A DNA stretch of 63,793 nucleotides, the filler included, from Dimorphilus gyrociliatus (lineage: Eukaryota > Animalia > Annelida), in NCBI GenBank assembly GCA_904063045.1. It is 4 parts of 4 records of this genome, joined end to end, with 100 filler letters (N's around TTAATTAATTAA, not from the genome) between each part and the next. Parts side by side here need not be neighbours in the genome. Positions count along the whole stretch, not along the records: positions 52,041 to 63,793 come from CAJFCJ010000228.1; 3 more parts are not named here. One strand, written 5' to 3'. Numbering within the stretch: position 1 is the stretch's first letter; each line of letters begins with the position of its first letter. Below, one piece after another: positions 5,001-63,793 of the stretch. The notes under the pieces are model-generated. The model was not told the origin of the DNA. It saw only the letters and a list, made by a program, of their open reading frames with translations, and did no database searches. The position numbers and the translations under genes are program-made.

Positions 5001-7129
5001 CTGATATTAGCAGCCCACCTCTTTGTGGAGGAATAGCTCATAGCAATATTTTTACTAACCCCTTTAGCATGAATCTTCCCCCACCTGGGTAGGTTTACTA
5101 TACTAAAGAACAAAGAACATGGAAATTTCAGTTGGAGAATAAATGTAAGATGTCTTCAAGAATAAATGAATGGAGGTCAACTTGAAGCTATCTCACCAAT
5201 CTTTATAAAGGATAATTTTTTATGCCATTCCTTGTGTGAAAATTGCTTCACCAAACAAACAGAAATGATGTAATAGCATAGATATTCTTGTTCAGAGTAT
5301 CATATTTCTTCACCAATAATCTTCAAGTTCTCACATTTCCATGACAAAGTTAACTAACTTAATAAAAAAGGTTCATTTGGATGGCAGCCTTTGATGAGAC
5401 CACATATATGCTATTGGTATGTCAATCTTATATTTGTTTTTTTGTATGTAGAATTTTTGAATTGTATATAATCACACCTGAAGAAGGAATATTACTAATG
5501 AATATCTTCAATCTCTGTATAGTGTAGGTATTAGTAGACTCTGGTGAGTCCTTGGTAATAAATAAAGAGGGGCGGACAAAACTGTGGTAGATCTTGTAGG
5601 TAAGAAAAAGAAAAAAAGTGTTTACTTTGAGAATTTTAAAATCAGTAATGGGCGACTTCTGTTGATCTCTGGTATTGGATATTTATAGAGAGTTGGGGTT
5701 TATTTTATTCAAGTCAACAAAATTTTCTAACTAGAGTACTATTTTGCTTAAAAACAAAAGAAAAACAATGTAGACATGTTTTGTTCAACTGGATACAGAA
5801 AATATTTAATAGAAACTATTACCATCAACTTTGGCTCCACTACTTTTAATTCTCAACATTAATTCATTAATTTTTGAAAGATACTCATCTACTTCTTTGG
5901 CTCTGGCTTTGTCATTTTCATAAACCAAAATAACATTCATTGAAGTAGCATTGTGGGCTGTCAACTGCACCATATTTGTACTTTATTCTATTGCAATTGT
6001 AGGAAGTTCTGGTTTGTCACAACTGTAATTGTTCTTTTCAATCATTTACCAATTTGCCAAAGTACTGGTCCAAATAGAACCTTTAAAGTTCCTCCACAAG
6101 TAGTTTAACAAATGTAATTTTGGTAGAAATGAATCAACAAAACACAAGCATTTCGTCCAAAGAATATGTATTGAGTAAAATGAGTTTCTAGTTCTAAACA
6201 AGCTAGTTTAAGCAGCTAGCTGATGGTTAGAAAACTGAACTATCAACTGTTAATTTCATAGGGTTTATATACTCTTTTGAAGGTTGATAGTTCACAAATT
6301 TCAATGTTCACAAAAACAAAAGTAACATTTTAAGACAAGAGAGTTGTAAATATGGTCATGTTTTTATTGTTTTCCTCTTCTAAATAATAATTGAATTTCA
6401 AAGGTTGGAGAGTTGCATAAGATGTAACAATTTTAATAGGACAAGTCCAACAATCAAGAAAACATGTAGATTGTATATTTGACGGTTTTTATATTCTACA
6501 TTAACAATGATATTCAATTGATTGAGTTAGTATTTTTAGCATCTTCATATTCAGAGGAAGTATGTTTGATTGATGCATGTTAAGTAGAACAGTATTGTGT
6601 TCACAATACTGTTGGATAGTGAATATAATCTAAACTTAGAATTTAATCATAATTGATAATTAATTCAACTAGTTTTAGTTGAAAATCCTAAATGTATGGA
6701 TTAATAAATTGTAATATTAATGCTAGGTTGCAAATAGCAATATTCTTTATATAATTTAATAGGTTTTATATAATGTGTATGCACTGCCCTACGTGAAACT
6801 AGGTCACTACTGCTTATCAGTGCTACCTGCATAGTGCAATACTGGTTCAATACTACTTCTCTATTGTAGAGTATAGCTGACAAATATATGTGTTCAATAT
6901 AATTCAAAAGTTGAATATAAAAATGGAAGTGTCTGGGTTAGCCAAGTTTTTTCATATTGGTCTTGATGTCTGCTTAAATATTAGTTTATAGAAATAATTT
7001 GCAATATTTTCAATAGAGAAAACTTGGAACACAAAAAAAAATAACTCCAACCTCTAAAATCAGTAAAAAAACCTAAAGAGAATTGTATTAAGGCAAATAA
7101 TAACACTAAGCTGGGAAGTATTATTAAAA

Positions 7130-7341
7130 GGGGTCAGGTGCAAATGTACCTGTTTTCAAATATAGCCAAAACACTGATAAAATTTTAGGGGAGGGTTAAT
7201 TTGGAAACTTGGGTGGATTTATGGTTAGAGGTGCTTCCAATTTAGGATTAGGTAATGTAAATATAGTTCAGGTATTATGCTCAACTCCTAAAATAATTAG
7301 GTATGCTTCAACCCCCAGAGGGTACATTTGCACCCTGTCCC
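7130..7341. mobile_element. 212-bp MITE with 9-bp target site duplication (Mutator-type)
   Basis: Imperfect ~21-bp TIRs GGGGTCAGGTGCAAATGTACC / GGTACATTTGCACCCTGTCCC, flanked on both sides by TTATTAAAA (7121-7129 and 7342-7350). Confidence 0.85.
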
Positions 7342-7636
7342 TTATTAAAAATATGTCATTTTTGATGGGAATTATTTGGTTGTTTTTATCTTTCTAGTTT
7401 CTTTTTCTGAGAATTCATTTTTATACTTTCTGCTTTATAACCACAGTATAGAAATCATAGCGTTTGGTTAAGGAAGTAAAATTAGTAAAAAAATACTCAA
7501 ATTACGTATCACATAGAAAATTTTTGCTATTTGGTGAATAATAGCTAGGAAATTCTTGCCATTGTGGTTGGCTTATATAAATAGTTGTAATGTGTAACTG
7601 CTGAATTTTCTAAGCTAGAGAGCAAGTAATAGAGAA

Positions 7637-10358
7637 ATGGCTATTTTTGGAAAAGCAGCTGTATTGTTCAGCTCAGTTTTGATATTGTACTTTAAGAAAT
7701 CTCATCAAAATTTGGAATTTTATCCATACGGCAATGGTACTACAGATCAGGTAGTCCCAAGCAATGATGATGACAGTTCTGGGCAGGTCTCCCTTTCGAT
7801 ACCCATAAAGTTCTTTGATGACATTTTCAACACTGTATTTGTCAATACTAATGGCGCCATTTCGTTTACTGTAGAAGTTAGCCAATACACACCGGATGCC
7901 TTTCCTCTTGCAGATGGTCGCCAGCTAATTGCTCCTTTCTGGGCCGATGTGGACACAACAAAGGGAGGAACTGTCTTCTATCGTGAGACGACGGATGTGA
8001 ACATTCTCAATCTGGTCAATAGTGACATCAGACAGGCTTTTATCAAGTTCCAATCATACAAGGCAATCTGGGCTTTTGTGGCCACCTGGCACAAAGTTGC
8101 ATATTTTGGCAGAGCTCTCGAAAAATCTCACATTCACAACACATTCCAGGCAGTGCTCACAACAGATGGACACAGGTCATTTACCATCTTTAATTACGGG
8201 AACATCAGCTGGACAACAGGAACATCCAGTGATGGTGACAAAAATGGCCTTGGTGGCACGCAGGCACAGGCAGGCTTCAATGCAGGGGATGGGCGACGAT
8301 ATTTCAACCTACCCCACTCAAGGACTCACAACATTATCGATGTTGAGTCCACCTCCAATGTTGGAATTCCTGGGAAGTGGATCTTTCGTATTGATCTCTC
8401 GTCAATTCAAGCAGGAGGCTGCAATGAGGCAGGTCAACTGACACTGTCCCCATTTTTTGGACACCCGCTAGGAGGAACTCTAGTGACTCTGTCTGGCCCC
8501 TGCTTTAACAGTTCCTCTCAAATTGTGTGCCGATTTGGTGGACATAAAGTCAATGGAACTGCAGTTGACAATGTAAGGGCCACCTGTATTACTCCATGGC
8601 AGTTGGCCTACAGTGGCCAATCACGCATCTTAGCGGAGGTTAGCTCTGATGGTGGAATTACATACACTCACAAAACATTCTTCACACTGATACAGTTGTC
8701 ATCTGACACAGTTGAACGTATCAGAGCAGATGAATGGAGCAAACTAAATTCACCTATGATCCTCCGCTGGGATGCCAATAAACTGAATTCCTCTTTCATT
8801 CATGTTGAGTGTGTGCTAGGACTGGAGCCCAAAATTGATTCCTCTCAGGACCCTCAAGTTGTATTCCTACAAATAATGCAAAACATCACCAATACTGGAG
8901 AAGTTTGGCTCCCCAATGCTTTGCATATAACAACATGGTTTAGAAGCTGGAGCAATCAGGTTACGGCCATCAGAGTCCTCTGTCAGCAACCCTGTGTCCC
9001 TGTGGTCTGATATCCACACCCTGACTGGCTATTGAAAGCAATGTTCAAGAATCTCCTAGCAAAAACCACAATCCCACATACAACGCCGAGAGGTTGGAGA
9101 TTCAGGACTGTTAAAATCTTTTGTTCGTGGAGCCTTAACAGCTATTGAAAGCATAAATGCTGGATAAAATCAGCTATCAATGCATACATGAACTTAAGGC
9201 ATCACGTGATAGTGCAAGGTGCCGTCAATGGTATGAAAAAATTCACCACCACCAGCGACATTACAAGAGCTCATCTCTTGCCCATGTACCTTTGATTACA
9301 ACATTGAATTTGAAAATGACCGCCGAATTCAATGACGATTTAGCATGTAACCGTGGGAGTGCTGTCGTTATCATGTTGGGGCTCATCACTGTATAAGATC
9401 CATTAGTCCCAGTCAGTCGGGCCACAGACAACAATGCTGCTATGACCAAGCAGGCAACATCCTACCATTTGAAAACGGAGGAGGAACAGTGGATTTGGGT
9501 TCTAATTTATTATCTCACTATTTTAAAGATGTACGCCCCTACAACTTCTGTTGTAAGTCTGGAAATAAGGACTTGTGTTCATTGTACAGTGAACTCAGGC
9601 CCACAGATGACTGCTCTGGATACCAACCTGAGCGTCCCACTAATACATTCGGAGATCCTCATTTCATCACCATAGATGGTTTCAAGTATACATTTAATGG
9701 ACTTGGTGAATTTTACTTGATAACTTATGAGGAAAGTAACAATTTGCTGATGGTTCAAGGTCGCACAAAAGTTTTTAACAGCCCAAACAACATTACTTTA
9801 ACAGCAACGTCTTGGGAGGCTTTCGTGACTGCTGTTGATGTCAGTGACACAGTTGAAGTGAGCATATCGCCTGTGAGAGGAATGGTCCTAGTTATCCATG
9901 GTGAAGATGTGACTGAAACCTTCCAGGATTTGTCGTACCAAGAGTACAATGGTGTGACAATTGAGGCTAACTTTAGCATTCCTCAAATTAAAGTAAAGTA
10001 CCCTGGAGGCCTTCATTCAAATATGAAGCTGTGGGAAATAACCTAATGGTTAGCATCCAAATGCCAAAGCTGTATCAAGGTAAGCTGAAAGGCCTTCTGG
10101 GTAATTTCAATGGTAACAAATCAGATGACCTAATATCATCACTTGGTGATCATGTGGCTCCGACTCTGATTTGAAAACAATACACAACTCTTTTGGTCTA
10201 TCCTGGATGGTGCCTGAAGGCAAAAGCTTATTTTTGCGTGAGAATAACTCAATGCCAGCAAACAATGCTAACTTTGTCCCTTCATTTGACATAGCTCATG
10301 ACAGCGTGAATTCCTCCATTTCAGAGACATTGTGCAATGGAGATAGTGCCTGTATCTT
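7637..10358 (+). CDS. SUSD2: SUSD2/mesh-like extracellular protein (signal peptide, NIDO, IPT/TIG, AMOP, VWD); intronless, frameshifted after ~8990, cut by the contig end
   Basis: NIDO (APFWADVD, NTFQAVLTTDG, AQAGFNAGDG, PGKWIFRID); GGTLVTLSGPCF; LWSDIH; AMOP (CPCT, QQCCYD in shifted frames); VWD (FGDPHFITIDG, GLLGNFNG). Confidence 0.88.
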
Positions 10359-52040: not shown

Positions 52041-52579
52041 TTGTTGTTTGATCTATTTTTAATGTTTTTAATTTTTATCATAGATTTTAATATTGTGTTT
52101 TTCTTATGTGAAGCTAGCTTCTCATGTTGAAAGTGTTTGAGTTCAGGATCTTTATTCTCTTCATTAACAAAAGTTGTGCTGTATTCCGTTTCTGTATCGA
52201 TGTACAGTGAAGGTTCATCATCTTCAATTGTGTTTTCATCAAAACTTTGTAAACACTCCATAGGAGTAGGTTCATATTCTATTCCTTGTTCATCATCATT
52301 TTGTTTGATTACTGAAAAAGGCATATTTTCTTCTTTATCATATTTAAGATCTCCAAAACCTTCAGAAGATACGTCTTCTCTTATTATATCATCTGAGTTA
52401 CTCTCTAAAAGTTGATTTTGAACTTTTGTAATCCCATTTGTGCCTCTTAGGGAATTTATTCCCTCATTATCGATTTCTAATTGATTGTTATATAATGTTT
52501 CATGGTTTTGAGAATTAATTAAGATTTTTTTGTTTCTAGTTTCACACTTGTTGTCATAGTCATTATCATCTCCTTTCAT
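52041..52579 (-). CDS. acidic low-complexity hypothetical protein, cut by the contig end
   Basis: ATG 11 nt after the stop of the 987-aa ORF; frame open to the contig edge. Confidence 0.55.
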
Positions 52580-52590
52580 TAAATATTTAA

Positions 52591-55554
52591 TTATTTTATA
52601 GTCTTCTGGTTTTTTAAAAGTTGAAAACTATTTGCTGATATATTGTGTAATCTTAAAAGATGCCCTTCTATCTTATCAGTATATTCAATTCCTAGCTTGA
52701 TATGAAGACTTTTAATATCATAAAAACTTGGGGGGGAATTTATAGATACATTTTCTTTTTTAAGTTTTAGTAAATTAATTCTATTCTCTAATCGTTTAGA
52801 TAGATCTCTTGCTTGTTTTAAAGTTATTAAACCAGAAATTCCAAACCTTACGTCTCTATAGATTTCACCTGTAGTAAAAAATTTAGGAAAAGAATTACTA
52901 ACTGCACAGTAGTAATAGTTATATAATAAAAAAAAGTCTGTCTTCCAATGCCTTCTGTTATCTTTATATATTTTCTGACGCTTAGTTTTAAAAAACTCTG
53001 TTACTTCTTGATTAATTTTTAACACTTTGATATTTTTTTGTATACAGCTCCTTCCAACATATTGTAATTCGAAAACCTTTTTGTTTTTTGCTATTGAATT
53101 TCTATGAAGTAATGATGGATTATAAACATATAATATTTGATCTTTTTCAAAAAGTTCTTTTACCATTTTCACTACTTTGTTGTGGTTTCCATTAAAATTT
53201 TCTTGTAGAGTTGTTTCATAAATGATCTGAACAGAGTACCATCTTTTTGAAAGTTTTTTAGATTTTAAGATATTATTAATAAAAATGCTAAAATCTATTT
53301 TCAGAATGTTTCTACACTTATTTTCATTGTTCTCGTTATTTAATTCGTGTAAATTTTTATTGATTTTTTTGTAAATATCCAATATTTCATTATATAATGC
53401 TCCAATCCTTTCCTTTGGAGATTTTAAATTCATTAATTCGAGATATACTTTCAGATATCTAGTCTCTAAGGTTGTATAATTATAAGAATATTCTAATAAC
53501 TTATTTACTTTGACTTTTTTATCATTGTCAGTTAAATCTTTTACATATTCTGCCCACGTCTTTTCTATGCTATTAAACAATTGATACGGGTCTAAATTAT
53601 TATTATATGTTTCATACAGTTTGTTTATTTTACTCTTGTCGAATACATGGCTATTTTTGGATCCTTTTAGGATATTTTCAAAAAAAATTAGCTCATAAAA
53701 GGCAACCTTTAAAATACTATCTAGATTTTTATATTCTAAGTTTACTATTTCATAATACTTTTCCATAAGTTTTTGTAAAAAATTTAGAATCTTATTAGTT
53801 GGGATTTCCATGAAGTTATCTGCATCATTATGTTTATAAAAGAGATTAGGTATATCAGTTGCAGTTATGTAGCCAGTACGACATTCAAATCTTAATGGAA
53901 AAGTAGTGTTTTTTTTTATTTTTATATTTTGATTTATTTGTTTTATAAATTTTTCAAATTTGATTTGTATATTAATAGATGATTTAGTTGGAATTATTTT
54001 TCTGATTAAGGTAAGGAAAGAAAATGGAAAGTTTATTTTCTTTTTTATAAACATCACTGTAAAAATGCTCGATTGGATCTGATTATATATATTTAGCTTT
54101 ATTAGTACATTAGGCATAACTAATCTATTTTTTTTATTGTTTGTTTTTAAATTATAATAAATGTTATAAGCTGTGCTTGTTCCAAGCTGTTTAATAAAAA
54201 AATCTTTGTCTTTATCTTTTTGCTCGCTTATAAAATAGGTTTTGCCTATTGCATTTTTCACTATAGCATTAATTGTATAATCTACTACTAATGTAGATGA
54301 TGCTGCTTTGCTTAATTTTTTATTTACTATTTCGTAAAAATCTTCTATTTTTATACTATCATTAAGGTTAGTTTTTGTACCTAGAGCTTCATAAAATATA
54401 AAAGAGTCTTTCAGAATTTCATTTTCTAAAAATACCTTTTTTAGGTTGACAAAGTTATCTTCACTTACCACCATATCTATAGTATTATTTGATGTTTTTG
54501 AACAGTTAATATTGTTATTTCGATCATAAGAATATGTTTTCTTTTGAAATACTGGTCTTTCAAGTATTAAAGAAAACATATCTTCTAAATAATGTTTCTC
54601 ATAAAAAGTTTTTAGCACATGGTAAAGCTCATTAAAAAAAACTTCTTCGCTGATATAAGTAAATGGAAGGCATATATAAATATTGATTTTCATTCCATAT
54701 AAACAAAAAAAACCAATTAGTATATTTTGTGTTTTTTTTACAGAAAATATTTTGTTTTCGTAAGAAAAAAACCCTGTTTTCGTCCAAATTTTATTTTTAT
54801 TATACTTAGTTTCACTTAGGTTTATATATATAACTTCATTGTTCAAAAAATTTTCACTACTTTTTATATCATAAAAACCGTAGATAGCGTCTATATCGCT
54901 ACGAAATTCATTAAAATGTTTATTTTTTGATTTTGTGTTTATCAGTGGAAGGTTTTTATTACTTTTTATAACAAAAGTTTTATAAAGTAGATTAGTATTG
55001 GACAAATCAAAGAAAAGTGGTTTTTGATAATATTCTGGATTTTCAACCATTAAATATAGAAATCGAAGCATTTTATTATTAATAATCTCCTGTTGTTTAT
55101 TAAAAAATTGGTATAGTCTAAGAATGTTAGGAAGACGAAAGTATATTAATTTTCCATTTCTGCTCCTTCTTACATTTAAATAATAGTTAAATTTATTATT
55201 TTGCAGATAAATATTATCAATTTCAATATTTATTTCAAAAAAATGATGTATCAAATATAAAACTAAACACGACATTCGATTTGATGATGATAATAGAGGA
55301 GGTTCTGTAATTGAGAAACTGGGAAAAATAGACCTTAAAAATGTGATTTTTCTCTTTTCATTTTTTGTTTGTAGTTTATTTAGAAAATTGTGAAAAACCT
55401 GATATATTTCATTAAAAAGATAGATTTTATCAGTTTCACTGAATTTTTTTAGAATTTCTACTAAAGTGTTACTTAGTTTTTCGGAATCTGAAAATCTTTC
55501 TATTTTAAAAAAACCTTCATATGAATTATTATTATTATTATCTTTTGTTGTCAT
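52591..55554 (-). CDS. 987-aa hypothetical protein, unassigned
   Basis: Uninterrupted 2964-nt frame in very AT-rich DNA; GGG motif 4 nt before the ATG; non-random motifs DIDAIYGF, FYEALGTK and PLRFECR. Confidence 0.85.
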   Translation of the reverse strand: MTTKDNNNNNSYEGFFKIERFSDSEKLSNTLVEILKKFSETDKIYLFNEIYQVFHNFLNKLQTKNEKRKITFLRSIFPSFSITEPPLLSSSNRMSCLVLYLIHHFFEINIEIDNIYLQNNKFNYYLNVRRSRNGKLIYFRLPNILRLYQFFNKQQEIINNKMLRFLYLMVENPEYYQKPLFFDLSNTNLLYKTFVIKSNKNLPLINTKSKNKHFNEFRSDIDAIYGFYDIKSSENFLNNEVIYINLSETKYNKNKIWTKTGFFSYENKIFSVKKTQNILIGFFCLYGMKINIYICLPFTYISEEVFFNELYHVLKTFYEKHYLEDMFSLILERPVFQKKTYSYDRNNNINCSKTSNNTIDMVVSEDNFVNLKKVFLENEILKDSFIFYEALGTKTNLNDSIKIEDFYEIVNKKLSKAASSTLVVDYTINAIVKNAIGKTYFISEQKDKDKDFFIKQLGTSTAYNIYYNLKTNNKKNRLVMPNVLIKLNIYNQIQSSIFTVMFIKKKINFPFSFLTLIRKIIPTKSSINIQIKFEKFIKQINQNIKIKKNTTFPLRFECRTGYITATDIPNLFYKHNDADNFMEIPTNKILNFLQKLMEKYYEIVNLEYKNLDSILKVAFYELIFFENILKGSKNSHVFDKSKINKLYETYNNNLDPYQLFNSIEKTWAEYVKDLTDNDKKVKVNKLLEYSYNYTTLETRYLKVYLELMNLKSPKERIGALYNEILDIYKKINKNLHELNNENNENKCRNILKIDFSIFINNILKSKKLSKRWYSVQIIYETTLQENFNGNHNKVVKMVKELFEKDQILYVYNPSLLHRNSIAKNKKVFELQYVGRSCIQKNIKVLKINQEVTEFFKTKRQKIYKDNRRHWKTDFFLLYNYYYCAVSNSFPKFFTTGEIYRDVRFGISGLITLKQARDLSKRLENRINLLKLKKENVSINSPPSFYDIKSLHIKLGIEYTDKIEGHLLRLHNISANSFQLLKNQKTIK

Positions 55555-55720
55555 TATGCCCTTTCGTAAGGAAAATGTTTATATACTTTTAATTGATTTA
55601 GATCAAAAATTTGGAGGTAATAATAATTAATAACATACCATTATTTTCGGGTTTAGTTAGCGTTAAGTATTGTTTATTTTATTTATTTATTTGGATATAA
55701 AAAAGATTCGATAAATAAAT

Positions 55721-56905
55721 GGTTAATGGGAATTATAAGGGTTTTTTGGAATTATAAGGGTTTTTTGAAAATTTTTAAAAATTACTAAAAAATAAAAATT
55801 TTTGTTAAAATGAGGAATTATTAAAATAACTATAAATTAGAGTTTATTAATTCGTTGAACTCTGCCTCATATGAATTACTAGAGAAGAGAACTATTATTT
55901 CATTAAATCTTTTAAATTTATCTACTTTTCTAAACCAAATTGATTGTAATAAATAAAGAAATTGTAAGTCCTTGCAATTGACATGCTTTCTGATCTCTCT
56001 TTTACTCGTACTCCAAAAACATTCGATGTTTTGAGTATGCACATCAGGATTATGTGGGTTTACAAAATTGTATGTATGATTTACGGTCTCATGTCCAAAA
56101 TCATCAGTCTCTGCCAGAGCAGCTTTATAAGCACTCCACTCATCTGTAATAATTGTGGTGCCTATCTCTACATTATCTAATATAACTCTTTTAAGAGTTT
56201 CTTTCTTTTTATCAGGTACCTGTACAACAAAAATATTTGATGTACCTCTTTCGATTCCACCAACATACCAGCATTGCTCTAATAGCCTTCCTCGATTATA
56301 CTTTCTTTTAAAAAATAAACTTTCATCAATTTCAACGATTTTAGGTAGACACTCTTCATTAATTCCACCTATACGTGTTCTAGTAATATTTAAATTTAAG
56401 GCAATAGCCTCTAAAATAATTTTATCCCATTTAGAAACAGTTTTTCTACATATACTAAAACTGTGTCCTATCACACATTTGTTGATTCCAAAAAGTAGTT
56501 TCCTTATGATTTTTAATAAAATTTTTAATGGCATTCTTGATTTATAAAAAAAACTTCCATATCTTACGGATTGTTTTTTCTTGCACTGTCTACAAATAAA
56601 TTTGAAACCATCTGTTATTTTTCTATCCTCGTGTAAATACATCTTTATGTCACATGGTTGACATATTTGATTGTTGTTTAATAATCTCCATCTAGCCATA
56701 AACATAATTATATCCTTTTTCCTAGATAAGGATTCTATATAATCAGCAGTTAAATTATATGATTTTATTTCAGAAAAAGATAATATTTCTGACTCAGGAA
56801 CAATAAAATTAAAATTTTTAATATTAACCATTTTTTAAGGGAGGGTCCTTGAAAATTTTCAAAAAACCCTTATAATTCCAAAAAACCCTTATAATTCCCA
56901 TAACC
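55721..56905 (-). mobile_element. Merlin (IS1016/IS1595-like) DNA transposon, 1185 bp
   Basis: ~55-bp TIRs starting GG, each containing a tandem GGAATTATAAGGGTTTTTT unit; no TSD seen. Confidence 0.9.
55830..56831 (-). CDS. Merlin/ISXO2-type DDE transposase, 333 aa
   Basis: N-terminal CxxC..CxxC; VEIDES; KYNRGR; WYVGGIER; IITDEW; VNH; HTQNIE. Confidence 0.95.
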   Translation of the reverse strand: MVNIKNFNFIVPESEILSFSEIKSYNLTADYIESLSRKKDIIMFMARWRLLNNNQICQPCDIKMYLHEDRKITDGFKFICRQCKKKQSVRYGSFFYKSRMPLKILLKIIRKLLFGINKCVIGHSFSICRKTVSKWDKIILEAIALNLNITRTRIGGINEECLPKIVEIDESLFFKRKYNRGRLLEQCWYVGGIERGTSNIFVVQVPDKKKETLKRVILDNVEIGTTIITDEWSAYKAALAETDDFGHETVNHTYNFVNPHNPDVHTQNIECFWSTSKREIRKHVNCKDLQFLYLLQSIWFRKVDKFKRFNEIIVLFSSNSYEAEFNELINSNL

Positions 56906-57007
56906 TCTTAGTATACTAAATGAATAGAATATCAATAGTATTATTGATATATCATGTAAAATAACTAGTCTCTGACGTATTATATATGCTTCTAAATTAA
57001 AAATAAT

Positions 57008-57451
57008 TCACTTACTTATCAAATATTGACTTGTTCCTATCAACTTATTATAAAAATTTATACAATAAGCTAAGAACTGTCTCATTATATACCATGTATA
57101 TATAAATTCTACTAATCTTATTATAACTTCTAACGATAGAATTATATATATAAAAATATTATTACCAAACTCCTTAATTAATCTTAGATTCATTGTTATC
57201 ATAAGCAGAGTATTAAAAATCATTTGTATGAAATAAGATTGTAGATGTGAAATATTCTTGGTTAATATACTTATGACTATCCAAATAGGATGAACTACTA
57301 ATGATGTCAGAAATAGTGTTATTTCATGTTTTAATAAAAATGTTGTATTTTTGTCAACATTAGCTACAAATAAAGAAATAACCGTAAGTACAAAAACCAA
57401 CATATTTATAATAATATAATTTTTAATAATTACTTCATCTGTTCTGATCAT
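57008..57451 (-). CDS. small multi-pass membrane protein, 147 aa
   Basis: About four hydrophobic segments separated by short polar loops. Confidence 0.6.
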   Translation of the reverse strand: MIRTDEVIIKNYIIINMLVFVLTVISLFVANVDKNTTFLLKHEITLFLTSLVVHPIWIVISILTKNISHLQSYFIQMIFNTLLMITMNLRLIKEFGNNIFIYIILSLEVIIRLVEFIYTWYIMRQFLAYCINFYNKLIGTSQYLISK

Positions 57452-57691
57452 ATCTTTGATTGTAAAATTTAATTAAAACCAGAAATCAAACAATTTTGTT
57501 TTAAAAAAATATACAAATTTTTTATTAATTTTATAATTATTTTTATTGAATGAATTATTTTTATAAATGAATTTATAAAATTATTTTTATTAATTGAATT
57601 ACATTTGATACAATTGAATTTATAATAATTTAAAAATTCTATTATGAAAATTATTTTTACTAATTTCATATTTTTACTAATTAAACCCTTA

Positions 57692-59272
57692 ATGGATCCC
57701 TCGTTTTCTATTGCTTTTAATCCTGTAGATAAAATGAATAGTGTCAAGAATCAAGAAAAGGAGATTCAAGACCTTAAAAAAGAGAACTTCGAGTTAAAGC
57801 ATCAAATATCACATTTAAAGTCTGCTTCAAGCAACAATGAAGTTGAAAAAGTTTTACAAAACGCTCAAAAAAGTATTCAAATTCTAGAAAATGAAAAAGA
57901 AAGAATAAATCAAGAATTCAAAAATTTTAAAGATAGAGAAACTATAAACATACAAAATTTATCAGAAGAAAACCAAAGACTTATAACTTATATAGAAACT
58001 ATGAATTCTAAAAACAAAGATACTTCATCAGAAAAGAATAAACTAGTAAATCAATTATCATTGAAAGATGCTCAGATTGATCATTTAAAAAAAGATTTAT
58101 CTAATAAAAATTATAGTTTAGAGAACCTGAAACATGAATTAAATAGTAAAACAGAAAAATTAGAATGCATAAATACAGAAAAAATAAACTTAGAACAAAA
58201 ATTTTTAGAAATCAACAGAAATAATGAAATATTGAACTCTAATTTACTAAATACAAATAAAGAACTTGAAAATATGAAAAAAACACAAAACTATACAATT
58301 TTTGAAGGAAGGAAAATTAAACTAGAAAATAAAAATTATGAACAAAAATGCATAAACATGGAAAAAATAATAAACAATTGCAAATTAGAAATTGAAAATA
58401 AAAACAATCAAATAGCGGAAGAAAAGAGACACTACGATAAAGAGATAGAGAAAATAATGAATATAAATTTTGATCTCTCTAGAAAAATTGAAAGTGTAGA
58501 AAAATTACTTCCAAATTACAAAAAAGAAGTTGAAGAAAAAAAACTTGAAATTCTAAATTTACAGAATAAATTATCAAATTATAAAGATTCTTATGAAAAC
58601 AACAAAAAAGAAATCATAGAACAAAGTAATTCATATAATAAGAAATTAGAATTAAAGTTTAAATCAATTCTAGAAGAAAAAAATGAAAATATTTATAAAT
58701 TAGATAACATTAGAAAAGAAATGAAAAAACAAATTGAAGAGAAGAAACAATCGTGTAAAGAAATTGCAAAAAAATATAATTTAGAAGTAGAAAATAGAAT
58801 TTTAATTGAAAAAAGGTTTTTAAATTTTGTAAAAAAAACTAAACATTTCAGTTCTATTGCCTTTTCTAAAATAGACCAAATTTCTAAGAATATGAATAAA
58901 TTTAAAATTAGTAAAAGCAATGAAATTGAACTGAAAAAACAAAATTGTTACCATAAAAATATTAACAAAATGATTTCAAATTTATTAAATAAAAATAAAA
59001 AAAATAATTCAACTGATAAGAATAGAATACTTTTAGAATTTAATAATGAATTTAAAAATGCTAAAAATGAATTATTAGAGGTTCAAGAATATATTTTAAA
59101 GAAAGCAAAACAAAATAAAATTTTAGAAAATGAATTAAAAAAGTTCAAATTGGCTTTTGAAAAGGTTAAAAAAAAATATGAAAACAACAAATTACAAAGT
59201 ATAAAATTATTGGATGAAATAAAGAGAAAAGATAAAATTTTGTATAAAATAAATGGTATAAAACAGTTTTAA
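57692..59272 (+). CDS. coiled-coil protein with centrosomin N-terminal (CM1/Cnn_1N) motif; Mto1/Spc110-like gamma-tubulin complex receptor
   Basis: VKNQEKEIQDLKKENFELKHQISHL matches CM1 (KEqe..i..LkKENF.LKlri..L); rest is heptad-rich; CCC motif 3 nt before ATG 57692. Confidence 0.78.
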   Translation: MDPSFSIAFNPVDKMNSVKNQEKEIQDLKKENFELKHQISHLKSASSNNEVEKVLQNAQKSIQILENEKERINQEFKNFKDRETINIQNLSEENQRLITYIETMNSKNKDTSSEKNKLVNQLSLKDAQIDHLKKDLSNKNYSLENLKHELNSKTEKLECINTEKINLEQKFLEINRNNEILNSNLLNTNKELENMKKTQNYTIFEGRKIKLENKNYEQKCINMEKIINNCKLEIENKNNQIAEEKRHYDKEIEKIMNINFDLSRKIESVEKLLPNYKKEVEEKKLEILNLQNKLSNYKDSYENNKKEIIEQSNSYNKKLELKFKSILEEKNENIYKLDNIRKEMKKQIEEKKQSCKEIAKKYNLEVENRILIEKRFLNFVKKTKHFSSIAFSKIDQISKNMNKFKISKSNEIELKKQNCYHKNINKMISNLLNKNKKNNSTDKNRILLEFNNEFKNAKNELLEVQEYILKKAKQNKILENELKKFKLAFEKVKKKYENNKLQSIKLLDEIKRKDKILYKINGIKQF

Positions 59273-59304
59273 TAATTTAATATAAATATTTAGAATGTTC
59301 TAAA

Positions 59305-59445
59305 ATAATTTATGTTTGCATTAGAATGTAAGTTATATAATTTATGTTTGTATTAGATATAATAAGTTATATAATTTATGTTTGTATTAGAATATAAGTT
59401 ATATAAATTATATGATTAGATATGAATATAAATTATATGTTTTGT
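59305..59445. repeat. AT-rich ~33-35-bp tandem repeat between convergent genes
   Basis: TATAATTTATGTTTGTATTAGA..TAAGTTA repeated about 3-4 times. Confidence 0.75.
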
Positions 59446-59483
59446 AAATTATTAATAAATATCATTTAAATATTTTCTTTTAA

Positions 59484-60991
59484 TTAACAGCCTTCATTAG
59501 AAGTTGGTTCTACACCTAAGGCTTTTGCAACTGCTTGATAACACGAATATCTTTTTTCAGATGCTGACGAATCTCCACCCCCGCATTCAATTGGTCCATT
59601 TATTGCTTTAGTAGTTTGTCCAAATGTAGGATTATCTCCTGTTTGTTTAATTACCATAGAATTCAAATACCAAATTGCAGTTTGCATGGCCAAGTCGGGG
59701 TCTTCTGCCACCTGTTCAGGATTCTGTACTAATTGATCTCCTAACCCCAAAGCTTCACCTGCTTTTCTGTAATTTTCTGCCCAGCTCAGTTGAATAAACC
59801 CTCTCCCGTGGTAACTTTTACCTTCAACGCCTGTGTTATCATTATAATCATTTGCACATGCATCTGGATTTTCTTTACATTTAATTTCCTCTAAATGAAC
59901 CAAACCACCTGTTTCATGAATTATCTGAGCTAAAAACATTGCTGCTAAATCTTTACTTTCAAAATTTTGGTTTATTCCTTCTGCTACAGGACTTAAATAT
60001 TGTGGATTAGGATCATAGCTACAGCCAGTTAAGGCTTGTGATATTTCTTCTTCAGATACTATACTTCCACCACCTCCGCCTGAACTACTTTTTCCTCCGC
60101 TGGATCCACCTTTACCACCCCGCTTCCAGTACCTGATTGACCACTAGATTGCTTATTAGAAGTGGATTGTTGGCTGGTTTGTTGAGTACCACCACTTTGT
60201 ACCTGTTGTTGTGGCTGTTGAAGAGAATTTGATTTGTTGTTTTTTGTATTCAAGTTAGAAGAACCTGAGGGTGTTTTTTGGCTTCCACTCTGTCCTTGTT
60301 CTGGCTGTTGAAGAGAACCTTGCTTGTTAGTGCTTTGTGTTAAATTAGAACTTAGACCTGTTTTGTTTAAGCTTTGTTTATTGCTATTACCGTTTTTAGA
60401 CTTAGAATTAAGGTTACTAGAGGATTGTCCTCTAGAAATCAAATTAGAGCCTTGATTGATTTTGTTTACCCCCATTTTAGGTTTTAATAAACTCTTATTA
60501 TTTAAATTTCCACTTTTATGTAATTGAATATTCCTTAGTTTAACAAAATTTCCTTCCTTATTATTTTTAACTTTTCTCACTAAAAGATATTCTCCATTAC
60601 CACCTTCTTTACTTTCATTTTCTTCAGAAATAATTTTTTTAAGTTTTTCTATCAATTTTTCACGTTTACTTCCTTTTTTATTTGTTGAAGTAACTTTTGG
60701 TTTATTCTTAATAACTGGACTTTGACTTACAACTTTATTCTTTTCTGTTTTGGTGTTAAAGGCACCGTTTATTACCTTATCAATAACATCACTTCCTTTT
60801 TTTGCCATTAAACAAGATAACGCACCACCTGTTATATTACAATTTGTATGCTCTGGACAGTTTATAGCAGTCCACTTTCCATTTAAATTACAGCTTCTCA
60901 AAATATTATTTTTACACTCTCCTGATCCTGCCAAACAAATATCTTGAGTATTGATTAATTGTAAGAATAACATAAAATATGAAATAATCAA
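59484..60991 (-). CDS. secreted GH19 endochitinase with N-terminal Cys-rich chitin-binding-like module and long K/N/S/Q/G linker; one-base frameshift at 60118-60121
   Basis: CLAGSGEC..SC..GKWTAINC..TNC; adding one G gives GSGGGKGGSSGG..IVSEEEISQAL leading into MFLAQIIHETGG, YHGRGFIQLSW and INGPIEC. Confidence 0.88.
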
Positions 60992-61189
60992 CCTTTTTTT
61001 AAATTATATTGAAACGAATATTATTTTCATACTAGAATTGTTTCAGCAGAATAAATTTTAATTGGATAGTAAAAATACCTAATTAGAAACTTTAATATCA
61101 TTTGTCAATAATGAAAGGTTCTTTTGTCTTCTACCAATTGTATTATTATTTCTTATTTTTATTAGTATTATTATTATATATATTTTAAT

Positions 61190-61350
61190 ACTTTTTACTA
61201 GAATTGATTTTTTTTATGTTTTTTAATATTTTTTACTAGAATTGATTTTTTAATATTTTTTAATACTTTTTACTAGAGTTGATTTTTTTTATGTTTTTTA
61301 ATACTTTTTACTAGAATTGATTTTTTAATATTTTTTAATATTTTTTAATA
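61190..61350. repeat. AT-rich ~35-40-bp tandem repeat upstream of the Utp11-like gene
   Basis: TACTTTTTACTAGAATTGATTTTTT repeated four times with poly-T/A spacers. Confidence 0.75.
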
Positions 61351-61385
61351 TTTTAATTTTTTAATGTGTTTTCTTAAAACCGCCC

Positions 61386-61824
61386 ATGAAAGTTATAAAA
61401 AAAAAATATGAAAAAGAAATACAAAAAACACAGAATCAAAAGATGAAGCTCTTGAGAGATTAAAAAAATACAAAGAAAATAAAAAAAAGTTGAAAGAATT
61501 GAAATCAGAAGTTTATTTTCAAACAGGAAATGAATTTTCATTTAAAATGGTATCTTGTAAAAATGTCAATGGAAGAATAATTTCTACTAAAAAAATTAAC
61601 ATTGATAAATTAAATAAGGAATTAAAAAGTATAGAATATGAATTAAGTAAAATTAGAAAAAAAATCAAAAAAGAAAATTTTAGAACAAAATTAAATTTGA
61701 TTCAAATGGAAGAAAAAAAGAATATAAAATTGAAATTGAAACAGATAAAAAAATTAAACAAAAATACGAAGAATTGTTAAAAATAAAAGATAGAATTCAA
61801 AGATATATTGAAAAACAACAATAA
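61386..61824 (+). CDS. UTP11: Utp11-like SSU processome protein; two apparent homopolymer frameshifts
   Basis: ERLKKYKENKKKLKELK....TGNEFSFKMVSCKNVNG resembles Utp11 R..dy..K...Lk.L....NPDEFYFkM..k..dG; CCC directly before ATG 61386. Confidence 0.6.
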
Positions 61825-62436
61825 ATTATTATTTTGTATAAAATTATCTTATCTAATAAATTCTTATACTTCCTAGAATTTTATATTTAATAAAAATTTA
61901 AGTCTTTCTCAATTCTTTAACAATAATTATAATTCAATAAAAATTTCAGTAGCTTTAATTTTTATTATACGATTTCTAAAGCTATTTTAACAATTACTGA
62001 TAATATTTTTTAAATTCTATTTAAATTGTTTATTATTATTCTTTTGTATTTATATATATAATTGTATATTCTTATTTTTATAATAATCTATATTATATAA
62101 TTTATTTATTTAGTAATTTTTTTATATAAAACGAATTACAAAAATATAAGTTTAAAATAATTTAATTAACACATGTCTTTACAAATTAACTATACTATTA
62201 CCTCTACAATATAGGTGTATTTTATACAGCATATTTAATCTTTATAGAATATTATTTGTATTTTTCATATATAGTTAATTACTAAATAACCTATTTTTAG
62301 TTTCTTTAATAGTTACTACATATTAAAAATATCTGTTTTTTGATTTTCTGTTACTATCAAATATTAGTTGATACAATTGAAAAAATTATTTAAAGCTTAA
62401 TTCATACTTGCTATGAAATAATTAATATTTTGATAT

Positions 62437-62520
62437 TATAGAAAAATTTATTACCTCCTTGATGTATATTTTATTTACCAAATCAAGTATAATAAATTTC
62501 TTATATTTAAAATAAAAATA
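62437..62520. repeat. 84-bp unit duplicated in tandem; the second copy is split by Merlin 2
   Basis: TATAGAAAAATTTATTACCTCCTTGATGTATATTTTATTT.. recurs as 62521-62532 plus 63647 onward. Confidence 0.9.
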
Positions 62521-62532
62521 TATAGAAAAATT

Positions 62533-63638
62533 GGGGCTGGTTTGAAATTCTGCCTACCCATAAGGTAGTACCCTTGTGTACTTTTCGACCTAAGGTAGGT
62601 ACCTATGTACCTACCTATGTTTTAAATTTTTTTTTTAAAAAATTATTTATTAAAAATTATTTATTAAAAAATTTCTTACATATTTCAATAAAAATAGAAT
62701 TAAATTCCTCATTTGTTGCATTAAATAAATATCTTTTTTTGAAAGTGTAAGTCTTTATCCAATGTTCTAGATTACTTCTCATAACTCCATTTTCATTCCT
62801 AAGACATCTTTTTAAGTTTGACCAAAGAGCCTCAATGTTGTTCGTGTGTACTCCATCAATAGACTTAAATCCATTGTCATGATCAACCTTCTGGTGTATA
62901 AGCCCCAAGTTTCTAGCAACACCAGGATAAGATGGATGACCATCACTTCTTAATATACTTCCTACCCTTATCTTTCCTTCTAAAATGCTCGAAAGTGTAT
63001 TGATTTTCCTATTTGGAATATTACATAGTATAAAATTTTGATGGCCAGATTCTTCCATGGCTCCTATTACCCAAACAGTGTCCTTTATATCATCAGGAGT
63101 ACTTGTTGGTAGTAAAATCTTTTTCTTTCTACATATACATGTCTCATCTATTTGAACAATAACACCAGGTCCACCAATAGCTTTAGGATACTGTTCAAGG
63201 TGATTGTGATATACACCTTCTAGGGCTTTTTTGATAGCCCAAACAGTACTTTTAGAAACATCATATTCCCTTTGTACATCTCTATATGTAGATGACGACA
63301 TAAGGCGATATAATATTCGAAGCATCTTACTAAAGTCAATATTAAAAGATATTAAACCTTTTCTTTTTTGACAACCTTTCTTTTTACATCTAAAGATTAA
63401 TTTTGTACCAGTAACAGAAGAAACTGGGATAAGCTTCATATCATTACCACATATGCAATCTTTAGAGATCGACAAAATATGATTATCAACAAAAAAGTCA
63501 ATTAGTTCACTATTATTTCTAAAATATAAATCATCCATATTAAAATTATTCATTAAGGGGCAATAAAATAAAAATAAAAAAGTGCTTTGGTTTGAAATTC
63601 TGCCTACCCTAAGGTAGGCAGAATTTCAAACCAGCCCC
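62533..63638 (-). mobile_element. Merlin DNA transposon, 1106 bp, complete with 8-bp TSD
   Basis: 26-bp perfect TIRs GGGGCTGGTTTGAAATTCTGCCTACC; TSD GAAAAATT at 62525-62532 and 63639-63646. Confidence 0.96.
62657..63553 (-). CDS. Merlin/ISXO2-type DDE transposase, 298 aa
   Basis: IGGPGVIVQIDET; VWVIG; LRSDGHPSY; HQKVDH; VHTNNIEALW; CCCC motif 3 nt before the ATG. Confidence 0.95.
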   Translation of the reverse strand: MNNFNMDDLYFRNNSELIDFFVDNHILSISKDCICGNDMKLIPVSSVTGTKLIFRCKKKGCQKRKGLISFNIDFSKMLRILYRLMSSSTYRDVQREYDVSKSTVWAIKKALEGVYHNHLEQYPKAIGGPGVIVQIDETCICRKKKILLPTSTPDDIKDTVWVIGAMEESGHQNFILCNIPNRKINTLSSILEGKIRVGSILRSDGHPSYPGVARNLGLIHQKVDHDNGFKSIDGVHTNNIEALWSNLKRCLRNENGVMRSNLEHWIKTYTFKKRYLFNATNEEFNSIFIEICKKFFNK

Positions 63639-63793
63639 GAAAAATTTATTACCTCCTTGATGTATATTTTATTTCCAAATCAAGTATAATAAATTTCTTT
63701 ATATTTAATTAAAAATAGATCATATTTTATAAAGATAATTTGAATAATTTTTATTTATAAAATATTTGAATTATTGAGCTATAAGCGTATTTT

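Follow-up and report, generated by a model that had tools for sequence, protein, structure and literature searches.

A compact AT-rich contig in the Dimorphilus gyrociliatus assembly, carrying a GH19 chitinase and two Merlin transposons, and its very probable microsporidian origin

Contig CAJFCJ010000228.1 of the Dimorphilus gyrociliatus assembly GCA_904063045.1 occupies positions 52041-63793 of the window, by which is meant the whole stretch of 63,793 nucleotides, and this contig of some 11.7 kb, with its chitinase gene, its two Merlin transposons and their neighbours, is the subject of the analysis described here. It has a G+C content of 24%, that of the genes being 25.9% and that of the intergenic DNA 17.0%. 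Eight genes (0.68 genes per kb) give a coding fraction of 79.5% and are separated by gaps of 11-838 nt. Frame breaks in the chitinase gene and the neighbouring Utp11 gene aside, the open reading frames (ORFs) of the genes are uninterrupted in the standard genetic code, and no introns were seen on the contig. The first-pass annotation had described closely packed intronless ORFs with one gap of 11 nt; the ORFs are indeed continuous and the gap, at 52580-52590, is exact, consisting of TTAAATATTTA between the TAA of a gene for a 987-aa protein and the next ATG. Neither Rfam families nor tRNAs were found on the contig.

The gene that provides the phylogenetic evidence encodes a putatively secreted chitinase (59484-60973, minus strand) built of a domain with six cysteines (the 6-Cys domain), a linker and a GH19 domain. 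It is split by a 1-nt frame break, upstream of the GH19 domain, into two ORFs, the first of which (60059-60991) encodes a short hydrophobic N-terminus, the 6-Cys domain and a long linker that is at first K/E-rich and then S/Q/G-rich, while the second (59484-59939) carries the GH19 domain. That domain scored 78.7 bits against PF00182, where the cut-off is 25.5, so that the earlier call of a GH19 chitinase is upheld, the gene being longer than the ORF first described, which corresponds to its 3' end. It aligns with solved bacterial and class IV chitinases, including the Streptomyces chitinase 2CJL (E 6e-27), and its HETGG and following LEE are aligned to the HETGG and VVE of that structure; we take the glutamates of HETGG and LEE to be the two catalytic residues of the GH19 family. 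The enzyme would be secreted, held on chitin by the 6-Cys domain and able to cut chitin of the spore wall (the endospore) or of the host at the two-glutamate GH19 site.

The best named matches to the GH19 domain were all microsporidian, with identities of 54% for Dictyocoela roeselum, 51% for Tubulinosema ratisbonensis and 44% for Nosema granulosis, followed by Cucumispora (41%) and Hamiltosporidium (40%) and then by hymenopteran and other insect copies. A phylogeny of the GH19 protein had been proposed at first pass as a check, and this was the sole gene of the contig usable for a tree. In the resulting maximum-likelihood tree (LG+C20, 42 rows) the contig sequence and a near-identical fragment described below (L001) fell inside a clade with support of 91/86 that contained every named microsporidian sequence, insect copies being nested among them. 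Within this clade the tree is a polytomy and gives no placement of the organism within the Microsporidia. Dictyocoela, a genus of amphipod microsporidia, supplies both the top named GH19 match and, in D. muelleri, the top named match to the first of the two Merlin transposases (37-46%), but these are between-genus or deeper identities. Eight insect-labelled GH19 proteins in the set nest in the microsporidian clade. One of them, from the louse Menopon gallinae, is marked UNVERIFIED_CONTAM and is the sister of Tubulinosema (98/88), which suggests that it represents microsporidian contamination of that assembly and not an insect gene. Transfer of GH19 genes from microsporidia to wasps has reportedly also occurred.

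In the N-terminal part of the chitinase, the 6-Cys domain has no match in Pfam and no significant match by Foldseek. It does match, at 40% identity (E 2e-14), the start of the gene lying just upstream of GH19 in N. granulosis, and a third copy was found in a further contig (contig 12584 of the Logan assembly of SRR21023582, here L006). All six cysteines are common to the three sequences, within a pattern of G-S-x-E-C, L-R-x-C, W and C-P-x-x-T-x-C. An AlphaFold2 (AF2) model built from the three sequences had a predicted local distance difference test score (pLDDT) of 73, and in a full VIA-align search with this model seven of the 18 chains at Z >= 2 were chitin binders of the CBM14 type, namely the CBM14 of chitotriosidase (4.1), Der p 23 (3.8), two Avr4 chains (3.5 and 3.1), Blo t 12 (3.3), tachycitin (2.5) and Der f 23 (2.4), all of these Z values being low. 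On the strength of this modelled fold we infer that the domain may bind chitin. The chitinase ORF opens at a TTG (60991), six codons ahead of its first ATG (60973), and with a start at that ATG the hydrophobic leader ahead of D-I-C is very short (MLFLQLINTQ); the N. granulosis protein is alike, with MLQVLLK before D-A-C, and in L006 the leader is longer, MIILLLGLVFSK.

The chitinase gene is arranged head-to-head with a short Utp11 gene (61386-61824, plus strand), the ATG of which is directly preceded by CCC and the frame of which is broken twice. The same arrangement of a short Utp11-like gene diverging from a chitinase made up of a 6-Cys domain, a disordered linker and GH19 is found in N. granulosis (SBJO01000050.1, here L003, of GCA_015832245.1). 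Identities to the contig are 40% for the 6-Cys domain, 44% for GH19 and 33-36% for Utp11, values far below what a single genus would show, and the likeness does not extend beyond the pair, which is accompanied there by MOZ_SAS and eIF5A genes and here by Merlin elements and a coiled-coil gene with a CM1-like motif; the G+C content of the N. granulosis region is 32% as against 24%. The chitinase neighbours in Tubulinosema, Hamiltosporidium and Cucumispora had no match to any protein of the contig. L006 is a very compact, microsporidian-like contig of 53% G+C that has RPS3, RIO2, an IRE1-like kinase (Pkinase plus Ribonuc_2-5A), Utp11 and MOZ_SAS in common with N. granulosis, in rearranged order. 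Its chitinase is a single ORF of 614 aa (6738-8582) comprising a signal peptide, the 6-Cys domain, a long disordered linker and GH19. This ORF spans three automatic gene calls, of which those at 6863-7372 (minus strand) and 7495-8004 (plus strand), lying in the G+C-rich linker, look spurious. In the public annotation of N. granulosis, likewise, the chitinase (L003, 6586-8753) is entered as two products, a hypothetical protein of 431 aa and a 'partial' endochitinase; the ORFs at 6586-8238 and 8199-8753 overlap in different frames, which places a frame break at the junction of linker and GH19, near the position of the break in the contig.

The identity of the short Utp11 gene had been proposed from the contig itself, where the piece taken alone falls below threshold (17 bits against PF03998, cut-off 25). 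The proposal is sustained by way of the orthologues. The neighbour of the N. granulosis chitinase, divergent from it, has 160 aa and matches Utp11 weakly; it aligns colinearly with the contig in two segments, residues 8-115 with 61397-61714 (33%) and, in another frame, residues 109-158 with 61684-61815 (36%). The L006 orthologue passed the Pfam Utp11 threshold with 35.1 bits, and when a profile of the three orthologues was compared with the PDB its top four matches were Utp11 proteins of the yeast, human and Chaetomium small-subunit processome (E 6e-5 to 9e-4). Because it is the orthologues, and not the contig piece alone, that match Utp11, the gene is judged to be real by transitive homology. 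It is about 145 aa long as compared with about 250 aa in yeast, and its product would have a role in assembly of the small ribosomal subunit. The divergent spacer of 412 nt between the chitinase and Utp11 genes contains tandem repeats of about 37-38 nt (TTTTTACTAGAATTGATTTTTT...) at 61170-61326 and onward, and a second set with units of 32-34 nt occupies 59305-59411, in the interval on which the chitinase and coiled-coil genes converge.

Two DNA transposons had been assigned to the Merlin group, and the assignment is sound for both. A Merlin (IS1595-like) element is recognised by an IS1595-type transposase, flanking terminal inverted repeats (TIRs) and a target-site duplication (TSD) of 8-9 bp; the transposase, in both cases PF12762 (DDE_Tnp_IS1595) above the Pfam cut-off, and the TIRs are present in both elements and the TSD in the second. 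Merlin 1 (55726-56901, minus strand) has TIRs of 53 nt that are 98% identical (55726-55778 and 56849-56901) and a coding sequence (CDS) at 55830-56831 for a transposase of 333 aa with a zinc-finger N-terminus and a DDE domain; a clean TSD was sought at its ends and not found. Merlin 2 (62533-63638, minus strand) has TIRs of 26 nt that are 100% identical (62533-62558 and 63613-63638), a CDS at 62657-63553 for a transposase of 298 aa, and a TSD of 8 bp, GAAAAATT, at 62525-62532 and 63639-63646. Since the two transposases are only 23% identical they represent two distinct Merlin families, and these would be different, apparently autonomous cut-and-paste elements inserted between genes. The best named relatives of the Merlin 1 transposase, those of D. 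muelleri, came ahead of molluscs and insects; the Merlin 2 TIR, used as an exact pattern, had no match in JGI metagenomes. Merlin elements with the DDE_Tnp_IS1595 domain and of this size are abundant in several microsporidia (PMC4202319), those of Anncaliia algerae and other species having, like the present ones, an IS1595 transposase of about 300 aa encoded by one intronless CDS between TIRs in an element of about 1.1-1.2 kb (PMC4202319). The two copies on the contig, for their part, differ in belonging to two families. The DNA around Merlin 2 has some peculiarities. An 84-bp stretch just to its left (62441-62524) is repeated just to its right (63639-63720) with 81-95% identity, each copy starting with GAAAAATT, and the insertion of the element seems to have taken place in a short tandem duplication, at the second unit. 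Just inside its right end, at 63589-63632, part of the left TIR is repeated in an orientation facing the right TIR, giving a perfect palindrome of 20 nt with a 4-nt loop, GGTTTGAAATTCTGCCTACC CTAA GGTAGGCAGAATTTCAAACC.

Most of the gene starts on the contig have a short C or G run ahead of them. CCC or GGG triplets ahead of five ATGs had been pointed out at first pass, and the count withstands a comparison with the remaining ATGs: such a triplet lies within 12 nt upstream of five of the eight gene starts, as against eight of the 337 other ATGs on both strands (2.4%; Fisher p = 1.7e-6), the start of the coiled-coil gene being taken as its second ATG (57692), without which choice the count is four of eight. 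The CCCTTA before this ATG is the same context as that of the Merlin 2 start. A CCC-like and, more rarely, a GGG-like signal just upstream of start codons has been described by Peyretaillade et al. in five microsporidian species (PMC2803860). Transcription on the contig may accordingly be expected, by analogy, to begin a few bases upstream of the ATGs at these signals, and the transcripts of the gene pair spaced by 11 nt are probably shared or overlapping.

The remaining four genes have proved harder to relate to anything known. The coiled-coil gene (57692-59272, plus strand) encodes 526 aa counted from M17 of an ORF that opens at 57644, with CCC at -6 to -4 of its ATG. The claim that it is a CM1 coiled-coil protein fared less well than the others: a CM1-like motif, EKEIQDLKKENFELKHQISHLK, is present near the N-terminus, and its top ESM Atlas feature matches were to Cnn_1N clusters (0.91-0.92), with six of the 10 best family-assigned matches being Cnn_1N, but Pfam, including CM1 (Centrosomin motif 1, PF07989), gave no match at E up to 5, and the alignment of the motif region with the CM1 core of CDK5RAP2 (ITELKKENFNLKLRIYFL) is weak (E 0.34). 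Its designation as a CM1 protein is thus weakly supported, if likely; such a protein would probably anchor gamma-tubulin complexes at the spindle pole body. The largest gene, that for the 987-aa protein (52591-55554, minus strand), has GGG at -7 to -5 of its ATG (CCC at 55559-55561 on the plus strand). The protein has no Pfam family, a word search of 8000 candidates was empty, phmmer against 1.84 billion representatives gave 0 matches, the JGI metagenome scan held no relative and the ESM Atlas no usable match, and a single-sequence AF2 model was too poor for use (pLDDT 30.7). To its left the contig edge cuts off a gene of which the 5' part (52044-52579, minus strand) comprises 178 codons for an acidic, probably disordered protein with no Pfam match. 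The least certain gene is an ORF of 147 aa (57008-57451, minus strand), hydrophobic and by eye of multi-pass membrane character, which belongs to no family; in a control of 200 shuffles the longest ATG-initiated ORF reached 161 aa once.

Some indication of the distribution of the organism comes from environmental sequences. L001 (JGI contig Ga0193037_10066220, sample 3300019033) is 96% identical to the contig in nucleotides and 97% in protein over the linker and GH19, but differs in being a 1-kb fragment, in its 4% divergence and in having an intact frame, with GGGGG where the contig has GGGG. On this comparison its source would be a different strain or a close species. The first 8 nt of L001, ACATGGGG, do not match the contig and resemble what we take to be the end of a template-switch oligonucleotide used in synthesis of complementary DNA (cDNA), and the fragment ends 9 nt past the stop codon, so L001 looks like a cDNA. 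If it is one, the chitinase is expressed in a close relative, the 3' end being very short. The start of L001 corresponds to about 60478 on the contig, a position within the chitinase ORF that immediately precedes an in-frame ATG (MGVNK...), and on the cDNA reading this 5' end could be that of a truncated cDNA or an internal transcript start. Public sequencing runs were searched with sampled 31-mers of 52591-58590. Of the sampled words, 69% were present in the best run, labelled organism A and of 60 million letters, 28-46% in four runs from a single study of organism B and 17% in two runs of organism C, with small shares of 5-11% in runs labelled marine metatranscriptome and marine sediment. 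The DNA of the contig is thus found under three organism labels and in seven studies, as well as in marine metagenome runs. Exact-protein look-ups of three contig proteins returned no record in the searched collections.

It is very probable, in our view, that the contig derives from the nuclear genome of a microsporidian, which most likely parasitises a marine animal, as the first-pass annotation had suggested of its origin. This conclusion is drawn from the GH19 phylogeny, the build of the chitinase, the Utp11-chitinase microsynteny, the CCC/GGG signal, the Dictyocoela relatives of Merlin 1 and the compact, intronless, AT-rich layout, and thus from three kinds of evidence: a gene tree (for GH19 only), gene order together with domain build, and start signals with short spacers and no introns. 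The contig would then carry ordinary microsporidian genes in a layout typical of the phylum.

Four observations weigh against this conclusion. Markers that define the phylum are missing, there being no small-subunit (SSU) rRNA, polar tube or spore wall protein gene on the contig. The 987-aa gene and three others have no recognisable relatives, microsporidian or other. Both GH19 genes of the microsporidian type and Merlin elements have been transferred to animals as well, insects among them, and neither is proof alone. The fourth is that three frame breaks in two adjacent genes could indicate DNA that is decaying and not living. All three breaks, one in the chitinase and two in Utp11, are at homopolymer runs: in the chitinase one G is missing from a run of five (C4 on the plus strand, 60118-60121), and in Utp11 the breaks, placed relative to the orthologues, each fall at a run of A, one within about 61407-61420 and the other within about 61684-61714. 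Since the frames of the 987-aa and coiled-coil genes are intact despite the 47 A/T runs of at least 6 that they contain between them, a uniform tendency to error in the assembly does not readily explain the breaks, which may be local errors or real mutations.

Of the alternatives, that which survives best also has a microsporidian source but one that is not hidden, the sample itself being a microsporidian preparation or assembly in which any animal-like contigs beside this one are carry-over from the host. With 31-99 million letters, the runs richest in the stretch are very small and yet assemble 28-69% of its 31-mers, for which the small genome would have to make up a large part of their reads, as in spore preparations or very heavy infections. 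Against this must be set the three organism labels, the seven studies and the marine metagenome, metatranscriptome and sediment runs, a distribution that is passenger-like rather than target-like, and the lack of any contig protein on record, from which the source appears to be unannotated in the searched collections. The spread over labels fits a passenger parasite, such as the one hidden in an animal sample that was proposed at first pass, and the small run sizes fit microsporidian-dominated samples equally; we regard the alternative as unlikely, while giving it appreciable weight. Far less credible is the suggestion that microsporidian DNA was transferred into a chromosome of the animal host and is now decaying there. 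It would account for the frame breaks in the adjacent chitinase and Utp11 genes, and microsporidian-type GH19 genes are present in insect genomes, but the 2964-nt ORF is intact in spite of 29 A/T runs of at least 6, as are a 1.6-kb ORF and both transposases, the start signals have been kept, neither flanking animal sequence nor introns were seen, the 96%-identical cDNA-like L001 suggests expression in a close relative, and every break is at a homopolymer run, as sequencing errors would be. We give the least credence of all to another AT-rich compact genome, such as that of a giant virus, an apicomplexan, a nucleomorph or another protist, for which AT richness, dense intronless ORFs and several orphan genes might be cited, since both the tree of GH19 and the N-terminal domain point specifically to microsporidia, the Utp11-chitinase adjacency is common to N. 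granulosis, the CCC/GGG signal is present, the long ORFs in the standard code argue against ciliates, and a virus was rejected because the IMG/VR viral contigs contain no relative of the GH19 domain.

With a microsporidian as the preferred source, it can be asked whether the species is new. The earlier suggestion that it may be undescribed is compatible with the data, in that no named GH19 sequence is closer than 54%, though unproven. From these comparisons the organism would have no close relative among the named species in the searched collections, the only near-identical sequence being L001. We put forward tentatively, and at somewhat less than an even chance, the idea of an undescribed marine microsporidian lineage that has no sequenced close relative, is widespread (three host labels, ocean metatranscriptomes and marine sediment), and possesses active Merlin elements and large lineage-specific genes such as the 987-aa orphan.

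Sequencing data often contain parasite DNA, and the finding, unsurprising in mechanism, is of use for decontamination and parasite discovery. If the assembly is labelled as animal, the contig and those accompanying it need to be marked as parasite DNA, to guard against their annotation as host genes or as horizontal transfer. As regards the family, it appears that the GH19 chitinases of at least three microsporidian lineages have an N-terminal 6-Cys domain, with a predicted fold like that of CBM14, and a long disordered linker, a build that is broken up or overlooked in automatic gene calling. From the data it could also be possible to obtain the draft genome of a marine microsporidian without a close sequenced relative, and to see which animals are its hosts.

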